Origin: Salisapilia sapeloensis CBS 127946
Lineage: Eukaryota; Protista; Oomycota
DNA: 53,163 nucleotides
Assembly (NCBI GenBank): GCA_023334545.1
Contig: JAADVB010000122.1
Span: 1 to 53,163 of the forward strand
Reading direction: 5' to 3'
Every line of letters begins with the position of its first letter. The first letter of the stretch is position 1. The translations under genes were made by a program, and so were the position numbers. This document shows, in pieces, positions 6,400-17,113 of this stretch. The notes under the pieces are model-generated. The model was given only the letters and a program-made list of their open reading frames with translations. It had not been told where the DNA came from and did no database searches.

Positions 6400-6761
6400 T
6401 TATTCTCGGAATAAGTCGGTATGAAGAAAATGGGGTCGAATCAATCAAGTTTCCATTCCGACCGCGGATGAGATGGGGCTGGCAATTTTGAAGATGTATT
6501 GCAGTTGTTATCAGACAGCTGTTTCGTACGTGTCTAACATAAAAGGGAGGCTACTGACGTGGGTTTCGATGTGTATGACCTGTTAGCAATGGATAGGAAG
6601 ACTTCGCGGTGTCCATGTGCTAGTGTCTTGGACGGTCCATCCAGCATTTACAAGCTAACGCTTGTGCATGCTGACAGCCTTCAATAGAGAGTAGTGATTG
6701 CGAGTCAGTTCGGTCGCTGCAGATGGTGAAGTTCGAACGTGGCTCATCCAAGGTCGGAGCC

Positions 6762-6777
6762 GCTCATTTCTGCTTTT
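6762..6777 (+). promoter_or_regulatory. Oomycete Inr+FPR core promoter element
   Basis: GCTCATTTCTGCTTTT matches the consensus GCTCATTYBNNNWTTY, 16 nt upstream of ATG 6794. This supports that ATG over the TTG start in the ORF track. Confidence 0.7.
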
Positions 6778-6793
6778 TCAATCGACAAGCGAT

Positions 6794-9700
6794 ATGAGGA
6801 TCGCTGCGTGGCTACTCATTGCAATTGCAATGGCGCTCACGGCGGTGACGCAAGCACAATTGCCACCAGGATCGAATTCGGCTTGTGGCAAGGAACGTGT
6901 GCGCAAGTCATGGGATGGCATGACGGACGATGAGAAAACTTTATTCAAGCGAGCATTTTCAAGTGCTATGGGCTCTGGCGAGGTCATGCGCTTCGTCCAG
7001 ACGCACATGGAAATCCAATCGAACCAACAAGCCCATAAAACGTGCGCTTTCATTCCATGGCATCGCCGGTACGTCCTGGCTTTTGAGAACATGCTACGGT
7101 CACAAGGCGATGAGTTTACCTGCGTCACTGTTCCGTACTGGAATGCACTCGCAGACTACAAGCGGCAAGTCAGTGGCGAATGTGAGAACTTGTGGGAGTG
7201 CTCTTCCGTCGTCCGAGAGACGTGTGATGACATTGCGACCACTGAACCAAAGCCCCGAACGATGACAATCAACGGTCGGACGCGTGAAGACTTCCCTTGC
7301 TACGGGAACAGCGAGTTTACGTCCAATCTAAAGAACTATACAGATGACAATGGGGAAGAGATAAACTGTTGGATTCGCGGTGATCACGTCAAGACTCTGA
7401 TTCAAGCAGGTTCCTCGATCTCAGCTGTTGGCAAGCTGATGCAAATCAACAACCATGTCGACTTCTCGTCGCGCATGGAAGGGGCCATCCATGCGGAGAT
7501 ACATAATGCTGCCGGTGGTCTCGTATCGACCTTTGCTGCACCGCACGAACCACTCTTCTGGTTCTGGCACTCGGCCATCGACTTAATAGGTTACACCTAT
7601 CAACGCTGCCATCTCAAGCAGACTGATGACCCATTAACATCTATCTATGGCTTCTCTCAAGAGGATAACTGCAACTTCCGCGACGACCTGGTCATTCCAC
7701 CCACGAACCTCGAGAGTCAGATCATTCAGAACACTGGCAAAGACGACGCGCCAGTCCAGTGCGAAGACGATGACTTGATTGGCAAGTACTATCAACCGCT
7801 GAGTAAGGACCTGAAGGACTTTATCGACTACAACAACGGCAACTTCTTTGAGCAAGAGTACGTCTACTCGTATGAGATGGCATCTGACTTTGCCGAAGAT
7901 TTGCTCGAGAATGATGACTACTGCCAATACGTTCCGCCAGAAGAGCTGGCGAAGAGCTCCAGTGATGATTCGTCAGTGTCTGAAGACAGCTCTAGTGGTA
8001 GTGCTACTGCTTCGTCTAGTGCTAGCGCTTCCACCTCTACCTCTGCTGGTAGCTCCAATTCCGCTAGTGCTAGTGCTTCTAGCTTCACTTCTGGCTCGAC
8101 CTCGAGTGGTGATGCAGTTGAGACTCCAGACGAGACGTCTACGGATGACGACAGTGGTCCGTTTGGTGGTGACATAGTGGCTCCGTCGCTCGCGGATGAC
8201 ATCGACTTTAGTACTTTCGACAGTGCTTCTAATGGTGCTGACTCTCCTTCGATGAGTGATGCTAGTGCGAGTGCTTCTGCTGACGTAGAAACACCTGCTA
8301 GCGGATCAGCTTCGGCACCTAGCTTGGAAACGGGTAGCGAAGAGAATACTTCCTCACCTGACGTGCCCGAGACTGGTGAAGAGGAGACTCCTGCGCCTGA
8401 AGGGGATGCTATCTGGGGCAGCTTTGGTCTATCTTCTGAATTTGGCGACTTGTTCGATGGCGATGCAACGGTTCAGCCAGGTTCTGGTGATGGCGCAATG
8501 GATTCTACACCGGGCTCAATGGATAGATCAATGGGTTCTACCTCGGAAGCAGTTGGCGATAGAAGTGTACCAGCCGATGAAGGTGACTCTTCAAGCACCA
8601 TCTCTCTGCCTCCTGCCTTTGACGCCAGCGTAGGTGACGATGACGAGGGTCCGTTCGAACCGACTAATGGAGTAGACATCTCTCCATCTGATGGGTTTGA
8701 AGCTCTTGAAACGAAGAGCCCTGCACCCGAGAACCCGGAGACTGGTGAAACAGAGGATGCTCCATCAGACGGGTTCGAAGCCGCTGAAGAGGGATCCGCA
8801 GCAGCTGAGGAAGACAAGGCAAATGCAGAGGAGACTCCAGCATCTGAAGAGCCTGAGACGGATGGAGAGGAGACTCCAGTACCTAAAGAGTCTAAGGCTG
8901 ATGGAGAGGAGACTCCAGCTCCTGAAGGAGAAAGTGCGTGGGGTAGCTTTAGCATGTCAAGCTTTGGCAGTTGGTTCGGTAGCGGGGAAGCAGCAGCGTC
9001 GGACTCGGGTAATGAATCGATGGATTCGTCATCTTCCTTGGACTCACTCGATGAGTCGATGTCTGGATCACTCTGCTCGGGATCCTTTGATGACGAAGTG
9101 ACTATACCAGAAAATGAAAGCGCTTCGAGTAGCGCTTCGATGTCTACTAACTTGGAAGTCGACACACATAAGGCTGACCAAGAGCCGTCGAAGTGTGCAA
9201 GCAAAACAAAGAGACCATCTGCTGACACGACACCGACAGAGGATGCCACCTCACCGCCTCCTGAAAACGATCCAGAAACTGGCTCCGAGTCGCACTCGAA
9301 CGATGGAGACACGGCATACCCTGTGCAACCAACTGAGCCACCTACAGAGGAAGAGGATATAGCATACCCTGTGCATACGACTGTACCGCCTGCACCACCT
9401 GCACAGCCTTCGGGGGATGAAGACATGGCCTATCCTGTGCACACGGAAGCGCCAAGTACACCTGAGGAGCCGGAGAATAGCGATGAAGCTTCTACATCGT
9501 CTACGGACGGTGCGGCAGAAGGCGCTACATCAACTTCCGAGGCCTCCACGGCAAGTGCTGAAGCACCAGCTGACGACAAACCGAACTCCATCACGGCGAC
9601 ATGGGATGGTGCCAATCGGTCTGACAATGCCGAGACTGCCCCATGGGAGCAGCCTGCAGACCAGCAGGATACAGTCCAAGCGGATATGTTGTCAGTGCCT

Positions 9701-10402
9701 GAAGGCGCACCGCCTCAACTACCGAACGGACGTGATTCTCCTGCCCCGGAAACGCCAGGAAAGGTGGAGCCTACGGATGGCGCATCGACTGGCGTCATTG
9801 GACATGATGGCAAAGGAGACGTCTGGACGTCGTTCGTGGACGATGGTAAATTGGCAATCAGTGACGGTGACAAGATGAAGGACCTGATGTACGTCAAGTG
9901 GTTCTCTCTCGTGCGCAACTACTTGGACATTCTCTTCCCAGGTGACGTGGGTGAGATCTCTCGACAGCTCGAGATCATCGAGTGTCTGACGTTCAAAAAC
10001 CAATTCGGTCTCCAGAACTTCCCGAAAGACTTTGCCGAAGAGCTTGGTCTCGAGGATACGCGTACGCGATGTCAGCAGATTGTCGATGAATACGCTGAAA
10101 ATGACGATGATAATGTTGCTGTGGAAACCATGTCTTTCAACGCCGAGGACGTGAAGGTGAATGAAGACTTGACACCAGCCCCGTCGATGGACCCAGAGAT
10201 GGCATATATTAAGACACAGACGGATCCGTCGGACTCCAAGGACTCGGCGTCTGCTTCCGGTGGAAATGCAAGTAAAAGCAAAAGTGAAGCGGATGACAAA
10301 GTCTACAGCTCTACGGATGGAGACTCAGCTGGAAACCTCGCACGTGTGAGTGTCGCGAAGGTCGTTGCAGTACTAACTTCATTGACTGCACTACTACTTT
10401 AA
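6794..10402 (+). CDS. Secreted tyrosinase (type-3 copper) with a long acidic S/T/P/E/D-rich stalk and a probable GPI signal, 1202 aa
   Basis: Signal peptide MRIAAWLLIAIAMALTAVTQA; RVRKSW; CuA H...AHKTCAFIPWHRRYV; VTVPYWN; CuB IHAEIHN...PLFWFWHSAID; hydrophobic C-terminal tail VVAVLTSLTALLL. Confidence 0.9.
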   Translation: MRIAAWLLIAIAMALTAVTQAQLPPGSNSACGKERVRKSWDGMTDDEKTLFKRAFSSAMGSGEVMRFVQTHMEIQSNQQAHKTCAFIPWHRRYVLAFENMLRSQGDEFTCVTVPYWNALADYKRQVSGECENLWECSSVVRETCDDIATTEPKPRTMTINGRTREDFPCYGNSEFTSNLKNYTDDNGEEINCWIRGDHVKTLIQAGSSISAVGKLMQINNHVDFSSRMEGAIHAEIHNAAGGLVSTFAAPHEPLFWFWHSAIDLIGYTYQRCHLKQTDDPLTSIYGFSQEDNCNFRDDLVIPPTNLESQIIQNTGKDDAPVQCEDDDLIGKYYQPLSKDLKDFIDYNNGNFFEQEYVYSYEMASDFAEDLLENDDYCQYVPPEELAKSSSDDSSVSEDSSSGSATASSSASASTSTSAGSSNSASASASSFTSGSTSSGDAVETPDETSTDDDSGPFGGDIVAPSLADDIDFSTFDSASNGADSPSMSDASASASADVETPASGSASAPSLETGSEENTSSPDVPETGEEETPAPEGDAIWGSFGLSSEFGDLFDGDATVQPGSGDGAMDSTPGSMDRSMGSTSEAVGDRSVPADEGDSSSTISLPPAFDASVGDDDEGPFEPTNGVDISPSDGFEALETKSPAPENPETGETEDAPSDGFEAAEEGSAAAEEDKANAEETPASEEPETDGEETPVPKESKADGEETPAPEGESAWGSFSMSSFGSWFGSGEAAASDSGNESMDSSSSLDSLDESMSGSLCSGSFDDEVTIPENESASSSASMSTNLEVDTHKADQEPSKCASKTKRPSADTTPTEDATSPPPENDPETGSESHSNDGDTAYPVQPTEPPTEEEDIAYPVHTTVPPAPPAQPSGDEDMAYPVHTEAPSTPEEPENSDEASTSSTDGAAEGATSTSEASTASAEAPADDKPNSITATWDGANRSDNAETAPWEQPADQQDTVQADMLSVPEGAPPQLPNGRDSPAPETPGKVEPTDGASTGVIGHDGKGDVWTSFVDDGKLAISDGDKMKDLMYVKWFSLVRNYLDILFPGDVGEISRQLEIIECLTFKNQFGLQNFPKDFAEELGLEDTRTRCQQIVDEYAENDDDNVAVETMSFNAEDVKVNEDLTPAPSMDPEMAYIKTQTDPSDSKDSASASGGNASKSKSEADDKVYSSTDGDSAGNLARVSVAKVVAVLTSLTALLL

Positions 10403-15010: not shown

Positions 15011-15182
15011 TTTCCAAGACACTTCAGCTATCTGCAAATGTTTTTTATACAGTTGAGGAAAGTGTAGACAAGCTTCCATGACTCTTCTATAGCTGATAGT
15101 AATCTAGTGGAAACTTGGGCAATTATAGCTACATTAAAAGAAGAACAAAAATATAAAAGTTTACTTGTCACATGACTACATG

Positions 15183-16666
15183 CTAATCCTCGGTCAGAGT
15201 CTGTAGACTCAAGTTCGGAACGTCTGAATTCAAAAAGCCAGGTTGTTTAAACCCTGTGGATACGTTCCGACATGTATACTGTCCAAGGTTCTTCACCCAG
15301 ACAGCAAACGCTTGGAGTTGACTTGCAATCTGCTCATTCACTGTATCTACCGGACTACATGATCATAAACTCTGTCACCTCTGCACTATACTCAAAGCAA
15401 GAGAAAGAAATACCTCGGCTCATACTCGATGTAGAAGAGCATTTCCCTATCTCCATACGATTACACCTTGCTGTTGCATATATGGAAGGAAGACAAGTAC
15501 GCGCGACTGGTGGCATCCACGAGATGCTTAACGATCGACGCTGGTCGACTTTGTATCTGGAGCACACGTAGGTTCTGGAAACCAAAGACGGAAACGATTC
15601 GAAATAACGCCTGCGACTCATTTTCCATTGCCACCACCACCGTAGCTTTTTGATAACTCTTTTCTTTGTCTTCTTCTGTGTTCAACGTGTCCTCAAGTCG
15701 TATTAGATCCTTGTCAGATCGACTTAAGAGAGCATAAGTAGTTACATGCAGGTTACTATCGTTAATATCTGGAAGAAGAATGTCTAGTCCGGATGCAATT
15801 GCTATTCTTTCTCCAGCTATTGCTGCACTCTGCTTCTCTCCTGTCATTTTGAGTCTATGGCATGCATCTGCGGCGGACCACATCGGCAGACACGTAACGA
15901 CTTGTTGTGAAGTGGATTGGAAGTGAGAGATAAAGGTGGAACAAGCTAATTGGAGGTCTATGGGAAGGTAGATGGATGTAGTGATAGTAGATGAAGCACC
16001 AGGGAGAACACACAGACACAATTTGTCTTCGTATAGGAGCTCTCCGACGATCGACAAGTCGAAGCCACTGGCGATGAGTGGATCAATGGTGGAGTGGAGG
16101 ATACCAGAAGACGATTCGATAGGTACGATGGCACTATCAATCGTTTCATCTGCTAAAGCAGACAAAAGAGATGGAAAGGTATCGAAAGGGAATGGTTTAT
16201 AGCTGCGTCTGTCTGACTGTAGGACCTCCATGGCCAAGTCAGTTGCCTAAATTATAGTAAAAACAGTTACATGGCAGTCCCATCACTAGAATACATTAAC
16301 TACAGGCGTGGCTATACGTACAAATGACTGTGGATCGATAAAACCAAGGCCGAATACTTGATGATCATCAGTAAATAGCTGATCATCAGAGGAGAGTATC
16401 GAGGATTCCTTAGGGTCATCCTTCTTTGCTACATATCGTTTTTTACGTTTATCTGTGCCTGGAACTCGACGCCTACCTGCACCTGGCAGGCGTTTAGAAT
16501 CTGGATTTTGCTGCTCAATTTGCTCTTGCTTGCGCCTCCAATGACGAATGACACTTCGATCGATGCCGAATCGTTGGGCAACTTCATACATGCTCGAGGT
16601 TTCTGCAGCTTCGAGTATACGGAGCTTCTCTTGCGCCGTAAAGCTCCGGCGCTTAATCTTCGACAT
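15183..16666 (-). CDS. Fusion protein: Brinker/pogo-type HTH DNA-binding domain, degenerate prephenate dehydratase domain and ACT domain; 4 exons, 431 aa
   Basis: Exons 16666-16322, 16246-15501, 15446-15414 and 15354-15183 are all joined by GT-AG introns and stay in phase. HTH: KRRSFTAQEKLRILEAAE...VAQRFGIDRSVIRHWRRK...PGAGRR. PDT: GFIDPQSF|ATDLA, AIVPIESSSG, IVGE. ACT: QALFRIV..F...IQSRP...EMLFYIEYE...VKNLGQY. Confidence 0.82.
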
Positions 16667-17113
16667 CGCGTGTCCTGCGTAGGTGGTGTTTGATGCAGTT
16701 AGAGAGGTTGATAGGTAGCATTGTAGCCAGGTACTTGAAGTTGGGATCATATATGCTAGTAGCTGCCTAGAAACGCCGTTAGGACGACTTCTCCTGCAGT
16801 AGCTCGCCATCTGCGTCATACACATGCATTTACCATGTAGCGAATTTGTATGGACTATGTAGAATATTGTCATTTGTGGTATAGTACTAAATATAAGAGG
16901 AAGATGGGAATATGTATGTAGCATGTAATCTAACAAGCTCGAGATTTACTGCGTCTATCCGTTCTAGGAACGGCTATAAGACCTAGTTTACGTCCTGCAC
17001 TGCATCTAATGTCGTTGTATGTGCATACCATCATGCCAGTAGGGTACAACGAACATGGGTAAAAGCGAGATGCATAGCAAAAACGAGTTCTATTGTTTCG
17101 TCCTAGGAAAAGA

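Follow-up and report, generated by a model that had tools for sequence, protein, structure and literature searches.

The minus strand of the window, meaning the whole 53,163-nucleotide stretch of DNA analysed here, carries a single four-exon gene that gives one spliced mRNA and joins a Brinker-type helix–turn–helix (HTH) domain to a prephenate dehydratase (PDT) domain and an ACT domain. The gene is a positional ortholog within an oomycete family that includes PITG_19429 of Phytophthora infestans, and it has evolved several times faster here than the neighbouring gene PDCD2. Judging from the residues that are replaced, dehydratase activity in this lineage is probably lost or much reduced. We consider it rather likely that the protein is a DNA-binding regulator carrying an enzyme-derived module for sensing or dimerisation.

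The spliced coding sequence of 1296 nt starts at the ATG at 16666, ends in a TAG stop and encodes 431 amino acids in the order HTH, basic linker, PDT, ACT. The gene is composed as follows.

15092–16686, minus strand: transcribed span, from the ends of the spliced contigs of four RNA runs
16322–16666, minus strand: exon 1, 345 nt, 115 codons, phase 0
16247–16321, minus strand: intron 1, 75 nt, phase 0, GTACGT..TTTAG, removed in four of four RNA contigs
15501–16246, minus strand: exon 2, the greater part of PDT and the first half of ACT
15447–15500, minus strand: intron 2, 54 nt, phase 2, removed in the RNA contigs
15414–15446, minus strand: exon 3, 33 nt, coding for the ACT strand EMLFYIEYE
15355–15413, minus strand: intron 3, 59 nt, GT..AG, removed in the RNA contigs
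15183–15354, minus strand: exon 4, final helix and strand of ACT (LQAFAVWVKNLGQY), divergent C-terminal tail, stop codon

Exon 1 codes for the HTH, a basic tail, a disordered linker and the first PDT strand, GLGFIDPQSF. The RNA data are four RNA-derived runs on three samples from one study. Each run gives one contig of 1346–1407 nt spanning 15092/15145 to 16678/16686, with a depth of 20–46 across all four; the three GT..AG introns are excised exactly and the contigs are otherwise identical to the DNA. At the joint between HTH and PDT the shorter side of the contig is still at least 255 letters long. The contig ends define a 5′ UTR of about 12–20 nt and a 3′ UTR of at least 40–90 nt. Retention of intron 1 is seen in none of the RNA contigs of the four runs, rare isoforms being lost from contigs. 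Two separate genes or a chimeric assembly are ruled out by the four spliced contigs together with orthologs in which the junction lies in a single exon. The first-pass annotation, made from the letters alone, had proposed one fused gene with three introns. The fusion is borne out by the RNA contigs, by fused orthologs with a contiguous junction and by synteny; the introns are spliced in all four runs exactly at the coordinates predicted for them, and the 16322/16246 joint, for which a check against RNA had been suggested, is spanned in each. The motifs that it quoted (GFIDPQSF|ATDLA, VTTY, LPIDLQLAC, QAL, QSRP, KRKKR, LFYIEYE and VKNLGQY) are all present.

The same architecture recurs across the oomycetes. 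HTH-PDT-ACT fusions are found in Phytophthora, Pythium, Globisporangium, Peronospora, Hyaloperonospora, Peronosclerospora, Nothophytophthora and Lagenidium, and HTH plus PDT (plus ACT) was seen in Lagenidium, P. kernoviae and P. nicotianae. Further named species from eight genera match at 62–93% identity and about 100% coverage. The fusion occurs in at least 20 named oomycete species and is annotated in databases as prephenate dehydratase. The search among other oomycetes that had been advised has thus returned fused orthologs in eight genera, and a one-off fusion specific to this lineage is ruled out. In P. kernoviae and at the metagenome locus L001 the HTH/PDT junction lies inside one exon; intron 1 is absent from both and is specific to the lineage of the window. 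The P. kernoviae ortholog has one intron, which intron 2 matches in position and phase (2); in each gene it precedes the WDYIFY/EMLFY strand, and L001 carries an intron at roughly this site. In the window and in P. kernoviae the HTH-PDT gene is followed by a WD40 gene and then by a Methyltransf_28/TPR gene, in equal order and orientation. A tree of the PDT-ACT part places the window protein inside the fused clade (SH-aLRT 93), where its exact position is unsure because its branch is very long. A search for close relatives among JGI metagenome contigs found none. For protein P0044 an N-terminal BED-like zinc finger was considered and rejected, as Pfam finds nothing there.

Other PDT fusions exist in these organisms. 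In P. sojae and P. ramorum, PDT is found fused as PDT-aminotransferase and as PDT-PDH-aminotransferase (PMC2705460 supplement), and this type of architecture is seen again in proteins P0095 and P0100. The aminotransferase-fused PDTs rule out, for Phytophthora, that the HTH-PDT-ACT gene is the sole oomycete PDT, and it is therefore not needed there as the only one.

The rate of evolution sets the window gene apart from this family. Between the window and Pythium the HTH-PDT-ACT proteins are 34% identical, compared with 56% for the neighbouring PDCD2, whereas between Pythium and Phytophthora the values are 60% and 59%. PDCD2 of the window is 56% identical to Pythium versus 41% to Albugo candida. 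The terminal branch of the window protein measures 3.0, against 0.05–0.27 in the crown. Within the family the HTH is conserved best: P. kernoviae and Pythium/Lagenidium share 86–90% identity in the HTH, 67–72% in the PDT domain and 73–75% in the ACT domain. In the lineage of the window the HTH is shown to be under purifying selection by one 180-nt low-depth contig from a 97%-identical relative, in which five of five differences in the HTH are synonymous (P ∼4e-4).

The features of the encoded protein, from N- to C-terminus, are listed here.

16490–16654, minus strand: three-helix domain of Brinker/CENP-B_N/HTH_Tnp_1 type, residues 5–59 (Pfam, PDB profile, Foldseek)
16469–16492, minus strand: basic tail RLPGAGRR just past helix 3, residues 59–66, near-invariant in 22 family members
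16436–16450, minus strand: NLS-like KRKKR patch in the linker, residues 73–77, read from the sequence
15692–16354, minus strand: PDT domain (PBP type II fold), residues ∼105–300, across intron 1 (Pfam, 2qmx, alignments)
16109–16117, minus strand: E159-S160-S161 in place of near-universal E-N-S; Glu kept, Asn replaced by Ser, then a one-residue deletion
15959–15967, minus strand: L209-P210-I211 in place of near-universal S-H-P (alignments)
15734–15742, minus strand: T284-T285-Y286 in place of T-R-F/Y; catalytic Thr kept, Arg lost (alignments)
15264–15649, minus strand: ACT regulatory domain, residues ∼315–405, across introns 2 and 3 (alignments)

Pfam matches on exon 1 were judged against the curated gathering scores, and three HTH families exceed theirs: HTH_Tnp_1 (E = 1.9e-7, 31.6 bits, cut-off 24.1), CENP-B_N (E = 2.8e-6, 27.3 bits, cut-off 21.2) and BrkDBD (E = 8e-6, 26.1 bits, cut-off 23.4). 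AF2 models and structure searches were run on exon pieces of the window protein. The AF2 model of exon 1 has helices at residues 11–23, 26–33 and 37–53 with pLDDT >90, the remainder being disordered. A profile of the family HTH has the Brinker DNA-binding domain as its top match in the PDB (entry 2glo, E = 0.003). Foldseek pairs the HTH model with CENP-B (1hlv) and Brinker (2glo) at a probability of 0.96, with no match reaching E 1e-3, and its matches are exclusively DNA-bound HTH or homeodomain proteins. The original assignment to the Brinker/CENP-B/transposase type therefore stands on Pfam, AF2/Foldseek and PDB profile matches, and the proposed profile check, made with Pfam on exon pieces, finds BrkDBD above threshold and also finds PDT.

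The window HTH retains 12 of the 12 family-invariant residues as well as the RLPGAGRR tail. Its identity to Phytophthora is 52%, compared with 86–90% among crown members. The KRKKR patch is a putative NLS, and K/R-rich patches occur at similar places in the linkers of aligned orthologs. The P. infestans ortholog PITG_19429 has been catalogued as a ‘Brinker’ family transcription factor, and its N-terminal 115 amino acids bound AT-rich DNA in vitro on protein-binding microarrays (PMC11267843). The AT-rich k-mers obtained include TAATTGTA and TAATAGTA (PMC11267843 supplement); the PDT-ACT part of the protein goes unmentioned (PMC11267843). The window HTH is 43% identical to this N-terminus. DNA binding by the window protein is plausible by analogy, because the HTH of the ortholog bound specific DNA in vitro. 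The recognition helix of the window protein differs from that of PITG_19429 and the HTH is accelerated, so that target specificity, and even function, may differ. It had been stated at the outset that no description of the architecture was known. The fusion is in fact present in databases for at least 20 species and one member is listed as a Brinker transcription factor; our literature search found no paper that treats an HTH together with PDT-ACT.

Pfam recognizes the PDT domain in exon 2 (PF00800, E = 9.3e-20) with a match that begins only at profile position 20, from which it follows that the first PDT strand is supplied by exon 1. PDB entry 2qmx is the best match of the window PDT both by sequence (E = 5e-18) and by structure (E = 2.7e-15). 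The structural neighbours of the AF2 model are PDTs first, followed by PBPs and the effector domains of LysR-type regulators; by model and structure search the PDT fold is kept. Conservation was counted over 41 near-universal PDT/ACT residues. The window protein keeps 24 of these and has replaced 17, whereas the crown consensus keeps 38. Its 59% of conserved columns retained compares with 28% identity over the PDT domain as a whole.

Beside the E-N-S, S-H-P and T-R-F/Y positions listed above, Ala216 replaces the Gln/His that precedes a conserved Cys in the alignments. The N-terminal loop departs from G-x-x-G-[AS]-[FY]-S, GKEGAFS having become DPQ-SFA with the loss of both Gly residues. The TRF triad is reported to be important for catalysis in E. 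coli (PMC13217925); in the window protein its Arg, which is 97% conserved, is gone, and its Tyr is the norm in the family. TRF had been read as VTTY. This is correct as to the lost Arg, but a complete loss of the motif is ruled out, as in alignments to 2qmx and to 237 homologs the first T of VTTY falls on the catalytic Thr and the triad is T-T-Y. Besides Thr284 the window protein retains both substrate-binding Glu residues, which match Glu159 and Glu232 of E. coli; these two and four catalytic residues have been reported as important (PMC8192741).

The description of the domain as a dead PDT is in keeping with the many conserved residues replaced (17 of 41) but not with the retained Thr and both Glu. 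We can only infer that it is dead, because these three residues persist and because a PDT mutant is still complemented by GqqA, a PDT homolog whose active site is partly changed (PMC8192741). The several-fold faster evolution and the 17 replacements make it probable that dehydratase activity here is lost or much reduced. The dead-enzyme description does not extend to the family, since crown members hold essentially all catalytic motifs. The degenerate site is confined to the lineage of the window and one metagenome relative, P0019 (locus L001).

The β-α-β-β-α-β unit of the ACT domain aligns throughout, with no Pfam ACT match on the exon pieces. The GAL(V) motif reads QAL(F), where Gln is the norm among oomycete orthologs, and ESRP reads QSRP, an exchange of Glu for Gln that is specific to the lineage of the window and P0019. 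Given these deviations, the one family-wide and the other local, Phe binding is not assured. Identity to Phytophthora is 42% in the ACT domain and 28% in the PDT domain; the ACT region and the C-terminal strands are better kept, in line with the first reading of the sequence, in which the ACT motifs are nearly retained.

In the regulator that we favour, the Brinker/CENP-B-type three-helix domain with its flanking basic arms would bind DNA and the disordered K/R-rich linker would join it to a complete PDT (PBP type II fold) and ACT module. This module would supply oligomerisation, canonical PDTs being dimeric or tetrameric. It may add an allosteric switch, with an aromatic amino acid or a pathway intermediate as ligand and the ACT interface and/or the PDT cleft as candidate sites. 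In crown oomycetes, where the catalytic residues are retained, one protein may serve as enzyme and regulator at once; in the lineage of the window the module may have been kept as a sensor or scaffold after catalysis was lost or reduced. A bolder form of the proposal is a Peronosporalean one-component transcription factor in which a Phe-pathway-sensing PDT-ACT module allosterically controls the HTH, the window protein being a pseudoenzyme version that keeps the regulator. We hold this form only tentatively and rate it below even chances; if true, the pseudoenzyme would show that regulation is the selected function.

A less likely account is that the family consists primarily of feedback-regulated prephenate/arogenate dehydratase isoenzymes, with the HTH an inherited appendage and the window enzyme remodelled but working. 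The appendage might then serve in nuclear or chromatin tethering, in protein–protein contact or in nothing. Crown orthologs, with 38 of the 41 near-universal residues, look fully competent, so that the family could well be primarily enzymatic, and it is annotated accordingly in databases. The window protein has an intact PDT fold and its catalytic Thr and both Glu, and GqqA sets a precedent for PDT activity despite a changed site (PMC8192741). Against this, no other domain of the family is conserved as well as the HTH, the P. infestans version of which binds specific DNA in vitro, and an inert appendage would not stay 86–90% identical between P. kernoviae and Pythium/Lagenidium. The window protein moreover lacks Asn160, the SHP motif, Gln216, Arg285 and both Gly residues of the N-terminal loop, and Phytophthora has other PDT fusions for biosynthesis.

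Erosion of the window gene could also mean relaxed constraint, leaving an expressed relic that is heading for loss and is neither catalytic nor regulatory. The terminal branch exceeds crown lengths about ten-fold or more, acceleration affects all three domains, 17 conserved residues have changed, the C-terminal tail conserved in the family is gone and P0019 on locus L001 shows similar erosion in a second lineage. We nevertheless regard a relic as improbable: after about three substitutions per site the 431-codon frame is intact, three introns are spliced precisely in four runs at a depth of 20–46, conserved columns are kept well above the overall PDT identity, the invariant HTH residues and the RLPGAGRR tail persist, and all five HTH differences from the close relative are synonymous. 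We give similarly little credence to neofunctionalisation, in which the PDT cleft was re-tooled into a DNA-tethered new enzyme or a sensor of something other than aromatic amino acids. It would fit the clustering of substitutions in cleft motifs while the fold, Thr and Glu residues stay, the rapid evolution, and the acquisition of other activities by PDT-fold enzymes such as the GqqA acylase (PMC8192741). The changes, however, extend beyond the cleft into the ACT domain and the HTH, and P0019 carries different replacements at the same motifs, which makes erosion likelier than convergence on a new site.

Transcription factors with an enzyme-derived domain that senses small molecules directly are the rule in bacteria; to our knowledge they are rare in eukaryotes outside the nuclear receptors. 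Here, in oomycetes of at least eight genera that are pathogenic to plants and animals, a DNA-binding domain whose in vitro motif has been published is joined to a complete Phe-pathway enzyme and its allosteric ACT domain. If the PDT-ACT module gates DNA binding, aromatic amino-acid status would be linked directly to gene expression, a link relevant to nutrition in infection, and the system would be open to assay, as the motif, candidate ligands and folds are known. The window copy is a natural experiment: it shares its descent with the crown genes, its active site is eroded and its HTH remains under purifying selection.

With the PITG_19429 family the window protein shares the three-part architecture, the invariant residues of the HTH and the RLPGAGRR tail. 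It differs in being only 30–34% identical overall, while the neighbouring PDCD2 shows ordinary divergence, and in lacking the Asn of ENS, SHP, Gln216, the Arg of TRF, the pair of loop Gly residues and the C-terminal tail. The gene shares its genomic neighbourhood and one intron position with the P. kernoviae ortholog but has two extra introns. Like canonical PDT/ADT proteins (the E. coli P-protein, Chlorobium 2qmx and plant ADTs) it has the PDT fold followed by ACT, with the catalytic Thr and two Glu; unlike them it adds an N-terminal DNA-binding domain and linker and has 17 of 41 near-universal residues replaced. Among bacterial proteins, TyrR is a transcription regulator that senses aromatic amino acids via an ACT domain, and PutA and BirA are ‘trigger enzymes’, in which an enzyme and a DNA-binding domain are united. 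Their domain families are unlike those of the window protein, and we know of no PDT domain in any of the three. GqqA from Komagataeibacter europaeus (PDB entry 7am0), the second-best structural match, is likewise a PDT-ACT homolog in which the active site is partly changed, but it has no DNA-binding domain and is a proven acylase that has kept its PDT activity (PMC8192741); in view of that activity, motifs alone are insufficient to call the window PDT dead. LysR-type regulators, which belong to the bacterial one-component regulators, share the overall plan of an N-terminal HTH, a linker and an oligomerising PBP type II effector domain, and the effector domains of CynR, OxyR, CmpR, ItcR, RipR and CatM lie near the PDT model, after PDTs and PBPs. 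Their HTH is winged, whereas that of the window protein is homeodomain-like and of Brinker/CENP-B type, and the PBP-fold domain here is enzyme-derived, is accompanied by an ACT domain and belongs to a eukaryotic host. Pfam gives no match to a LysR profile in the window protein and the likeness is at the level of the PBP fold; with no homology beyond that shared fold, the resemblance to the LysR-type regulators points to convergence, an analogy rather than membership.

The HTH and PDT reading frames, listed separately in the window, are parts of one spliced gene, as the first-pass annotation had proposed. In four organism A runs (three samples, one study) a single transcript contig per run, of 1346–1407 nt, extends from 15092/15145 to 16678/16686 with the three introns removed exactly and is otherwise identical. 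The HTH/PDT joint is covered by at least 255 letters on the shorter side of the contigs in all four runs. The contigs derive from RNA, since they lack the GT..AG introns; the unspliced form is present in genomic run X5. X5 is the likely source DNA run, and its contigs total only about 23–24 Mb, pointing to a small, unannotated oomycete genome. Retention of intron 1 is seen in none of the four transcript contigs, a type of assembly that drops rare isoforms. The borders of this intron, read from the sequence, agree with those annotated earlier.

Features of the HTH-PDT-ACT gene
16666, minus strand: start ATG, the first ATG of the transcript
16666–16322, minus strand: exon 1, 345 nt (exactly 115 codons), ending in TTT before GTACGT
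16321–16247, minus strand: intron 1, 75 nt, starting with GTACGT and ending with TTTAG at 16247
15500–15447, minus strand: intron 2, 54 nt, phase 2, GT..AG
15413–15355, minus strand: intron 3, 59 nt, GT..AG
15185–15183, minus strand: stop TAG, closing a 1296 nt coding sequence for a 431-amino-acid protein

HTH_Tnp_1, CENP-B_N and BrkDBD each match residues 5–59 over the curated Pfam cut-off, and PDT (PF00800) matches exon 2 (E = 9.3e-20), which places the expected BrkDBD and PDT domains in exons 1 and 2, respectively. The PDT match begins only at profile position 20 and therefore the first PDT strand comes from exon 1. The NCBIfam prephenate dehydratase models match at E = 5e-23, far under the equivalog cut-off. 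In an AlphaFold2 model of exon 1, calculated with 22 family sequences as input, helices 11–23, 26–33 and 37–53 (pLDDT > 90) are followed by a disordered linker. Foldseek matches this model exclusively to DNA-bound homeodomain-like proteins, including CENP-B (1hlv), the Brinker DNA-binding domain (2glo), both with a probability of 0.96, the CENP-B_N domain of Dan and the IstA transposase, although for this very small domain nothing reaches E = 1e-3. The best PDB match of the family profile is Brinker 2glo (E = 0.003), which together with the Pfam matches bears out the suggested Brinker-type likeness.

The HTH is the best-conserved part of the family. In it 12 residues are invariant, helix 3 is followed by the basic tail RLPGAGRR, and all of these are retained in the window. 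Between Phytophthora kernoviae and Pythium or Lagenidium the identity is 86–90% for the HTH, 67–72% for the PDT and 73–75% for the ACT domain; between the window and Phytophthora it is 52%, 28% and 42%, respectively. The P. infestans ortholog, PITG_19429, is catalogued as 'Brinker' in a study that examined transcription factors of this species on protein-binding microarrays and that used the N-terminal 115 amino acids of this family member and obtained AT-rich k-mers, for example TAATTGTA, TAATAGTA, TATTAATA and AATAGTAC (PMC11267843). The main text of that study mentions merely an overlap in specificity with a MADS-box factor, and 'prephenate' is absent from its wording (PMC11267843). The window HTH shares 43% identity with the construct used there. 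Within the literature collection searched, PITG_19429 appears in no further paper, and none unites prephenate dehydratase, Phytophthora and helix-turn-helix. The construct agrees with the P. infestans T30-4 reference model P0182 (PITG_19429, 423 amino acids) for about the first 110 residues and thereafter with P0168, an alternative P. infestans-type Logan model of 475 amino acids. P0182 skips from ..KKPKTE directly to RFQGKEG, thus lacking the first PDT strand and some of the linker, both of which the construct and P0168 contain; judged from these sequences, P0182 is probably mis-spliced.

An exhaustive HMMER search of protein collections with exon 2 gave, without a self-match, a best identity of at most 36%; the collections contain no protein of the window genome. 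In three of the four top matches (Lagenidium, P. kernoviae with 465 amino acids and P. nicotianae) an N-terminal BrkDBD/CENP-B_N/HTH_Tnp_1 domain precedes the PDT. With the P. kernoviae protein as query, the same fusion is found as full-length orthologs (62–93% identity, ∼100% coverage), mostly labelled 'prephenate dehydratase', in many Phytophthora species, Nothophytophthora, Pythium oligandrum, [Pythium] brassicae, Globisporangium, three Peronospora species, Hyaloperonospora, Peronosclerospora and Lagenidium. This query has no match in Saprolegniales or Albugo, despite their proteomes being in the searched collection. Gene order, a shared intron and the tree support orthology of the window gene to these fused genes. 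In both the window and P. kernoviae a same-strand WD40 gene and then an opposite-strand Methyltransf_28/TPR gene follow, the sole P. kernoviae intron (70 nt, phase 2, directly before WDYIFY) matches intron 2 in position and phase, and in the tree the PDT-ACT part joins the fused clade (SH-aLRT 93). In P. kernoviae and on the JGI metagenome contig L001 a single exon spans the HTH/PDT junction, and the fusion is therefore independent of intron 1 of the window.

A C-terminal tail ending in Cys (..VEPPRWKSV.NAIAC or ..SPWHG...AAC in the alignment) is common to the crown oomycete orthologs and to the HTH-less eukaryotic relatives P0012, P0199 and P0200; the window tail (15183–15260, ..LSLQTLTED) is unrelated to it. 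The Lagenidium model P0009 (DAZ92746.1) fuses a tyrosinase with the HTH-PDT gene, implying that the two adjoin there, and a long ORF annotated as tyrosinase-bearing lies at 6698–10402 on the plus strand of the window, less than 5 kb from the HTH-PDT-ACT gene. Linkage of a phenol oxidase to a putative regulator derived from the Phe pathway may be conserved.

The state of the PDT-ACT module bears on two rival explanations, a working isoenzyme carrying an HTH appendage and a re-tooled PDT cleft. Exon 2 retains the PDT fold (AlphaFold2, mean pLDDT 80), with 2qmx (E = 2.7e-15), GqqA (7am0), 6vh5, 3mwb and 2qmw as the best structural matches. Across 237 canonical PDT homologs, 41 alignment columns reach 80% conservation or more; of these, 38 are kept in the oomycete fused consensus, 24 in the window and 18 in P0019, the HTH-PDT-ACT protein encoded on L001. 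The window changes include two in the N-terminal loop (G113Q, A119L) and, elsewhere, N160S, S209L/H210P/P211I, Q216A, T240A, R285T, E347Q (ESRP to QSRP), Y366M and D371E. The TRF triad is reportedly critical for catalysis, with GALV and ESRP as regulatory motifs (PMC13217925); in the Escherichia coli enzyme E159 and E232 are reported to bind substrate and four other residues to be catalytic (PMC8192741). The earlier claim that TRF is lost holds for its Arg (R285T) but not for its Thr, with which T284 is paired by HMMER's alignment to 2qmx and by the two MAFFT alignments. A dead PDT agrees with the change of 17 of the 41 columns, but T284, E159 and the Glu of AAIAGE are kept along with the fold. 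Dehydratase activity has likely been lost or strongly reduced in the window protein, and only likely because GqqA, a PDT homolog with a part-changed site, complements a PDT mutant despite retaining just two of the four catalytic residues (PMC8192741).

Motif erosion is specific to the window lineage and, with differing replacements (PTSTLLS, MSEMS, VSSH and VQSVQQ in the alignment), to P0019. The latter gene (L001:3020–4526, on a contig of 44.5% GC) looks like an independent second case of a degenerate HTH-PDT-ACT gene; one ORF holds its HTH and PDT, and the C-terminal end of its ACT domain comes after an intron. It has QSVQ in place of ESRP, its RLPGAGRR tail is gone, it shares only 27% identity with the window protein and its branch is also very long.

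The third rival is an expressed relic. With the neighbouring PDCD2 gene as a control for rate, the window organism is about as distant from Pythium as Phytophthora is, and sequence comparison indicates that the HTH-PDT-ACT gene has evolved several-fold faster in the window lineage (terminal branch 3.0 substitutions per site versus 0.05–0.27 in the crown). By PDCD2, Pythium and Lagenidium are nearest to the window organism.

Protein identities for PDCD2 and HTH-PDT-ACT
Window versus Pythium oligandrum: PDCD2 56%, HTH-PDT-ACT 34%
Pythium versus Phytophthora: PDCD2 59%, HTH-PDT-ACT 60%
Pythium versus Lagenidium: PDCD2 63%, HTH-PDT-ACT 65%
Window versus Saprolegnia: PDCD2 46%
Window versus Albugo: PDCD2 41%

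All three domains are accelerated, and therefore relaxation specific to the PDT cannot be read from identity alone. Simple decay is argued against by the intact, spliced ORF, by retention at the conserved columns (59% versus an overall PDT identity of 28%) and by synonymous changes in the HTH. A 180 nt contig from the 2025 organism B RNA run X7 matches the HTH coding region (16485–16664) at 97% identity, so that the sample contained a strain or close relative of the window organism. All five differences are third-position synonymous (P ≃ 4e-4 for 38 synonymous against 142 non-synonymous sites), which is thin evidence as it comes from a single low-depth contig.

Phytophthora sojae and P. ramorum have proteins in which prephenate dehydratase is joined to an aminotransferase, and others in which it is joined to an aminotransferase together with prephenate dehydrogenase (PMC2705460 supplement); the trifunctional architecture was met in two further protein matches. 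These fusions rule out HTH-PDT-ACT as the sole PDT of Phytophthora; it is therefore a separate paralog of which bulk Phe synthesis is not required. A compact-genome eukaryote (P0044, L002:6001–7299, a Logan contig of SRR23274491) has an intact PDT-ACT behind ∼135 amino acids in which no Pfam domain was found and where a Cys/His pattern, C..C...H....C, resembles a BED-type zinc finger.

The best-supported reading is that the HTH-PDT-ACT protein is a putative DNA-binding regulator, in which the PDT-ACT module would supply oligomerisation and, probably, a conformational switch under ligand control. The crown genes may encode an enzyme and a regulator in one, and the window copy is probably a regulator only. 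The architecture, at first taken to be undescribed, is visible in databases and has one member catalogued as a transcription factor, which places the window gene, as a divergent member, in a family already on record. What does appear undescribed is the two parts read together, as a eukaryotic transcription factor with a sensor derived from an enzyme; this reading is directly testable. After PDTs, the next structural matches of exon 2 are periplasmic binding proteins, along with effector domains from LysR-type regulators. Bacterial regulators that join an HTH to a periplasmic binding protein fold have the same layout as the HTH-PDT-ACT protein, reached through convergence.
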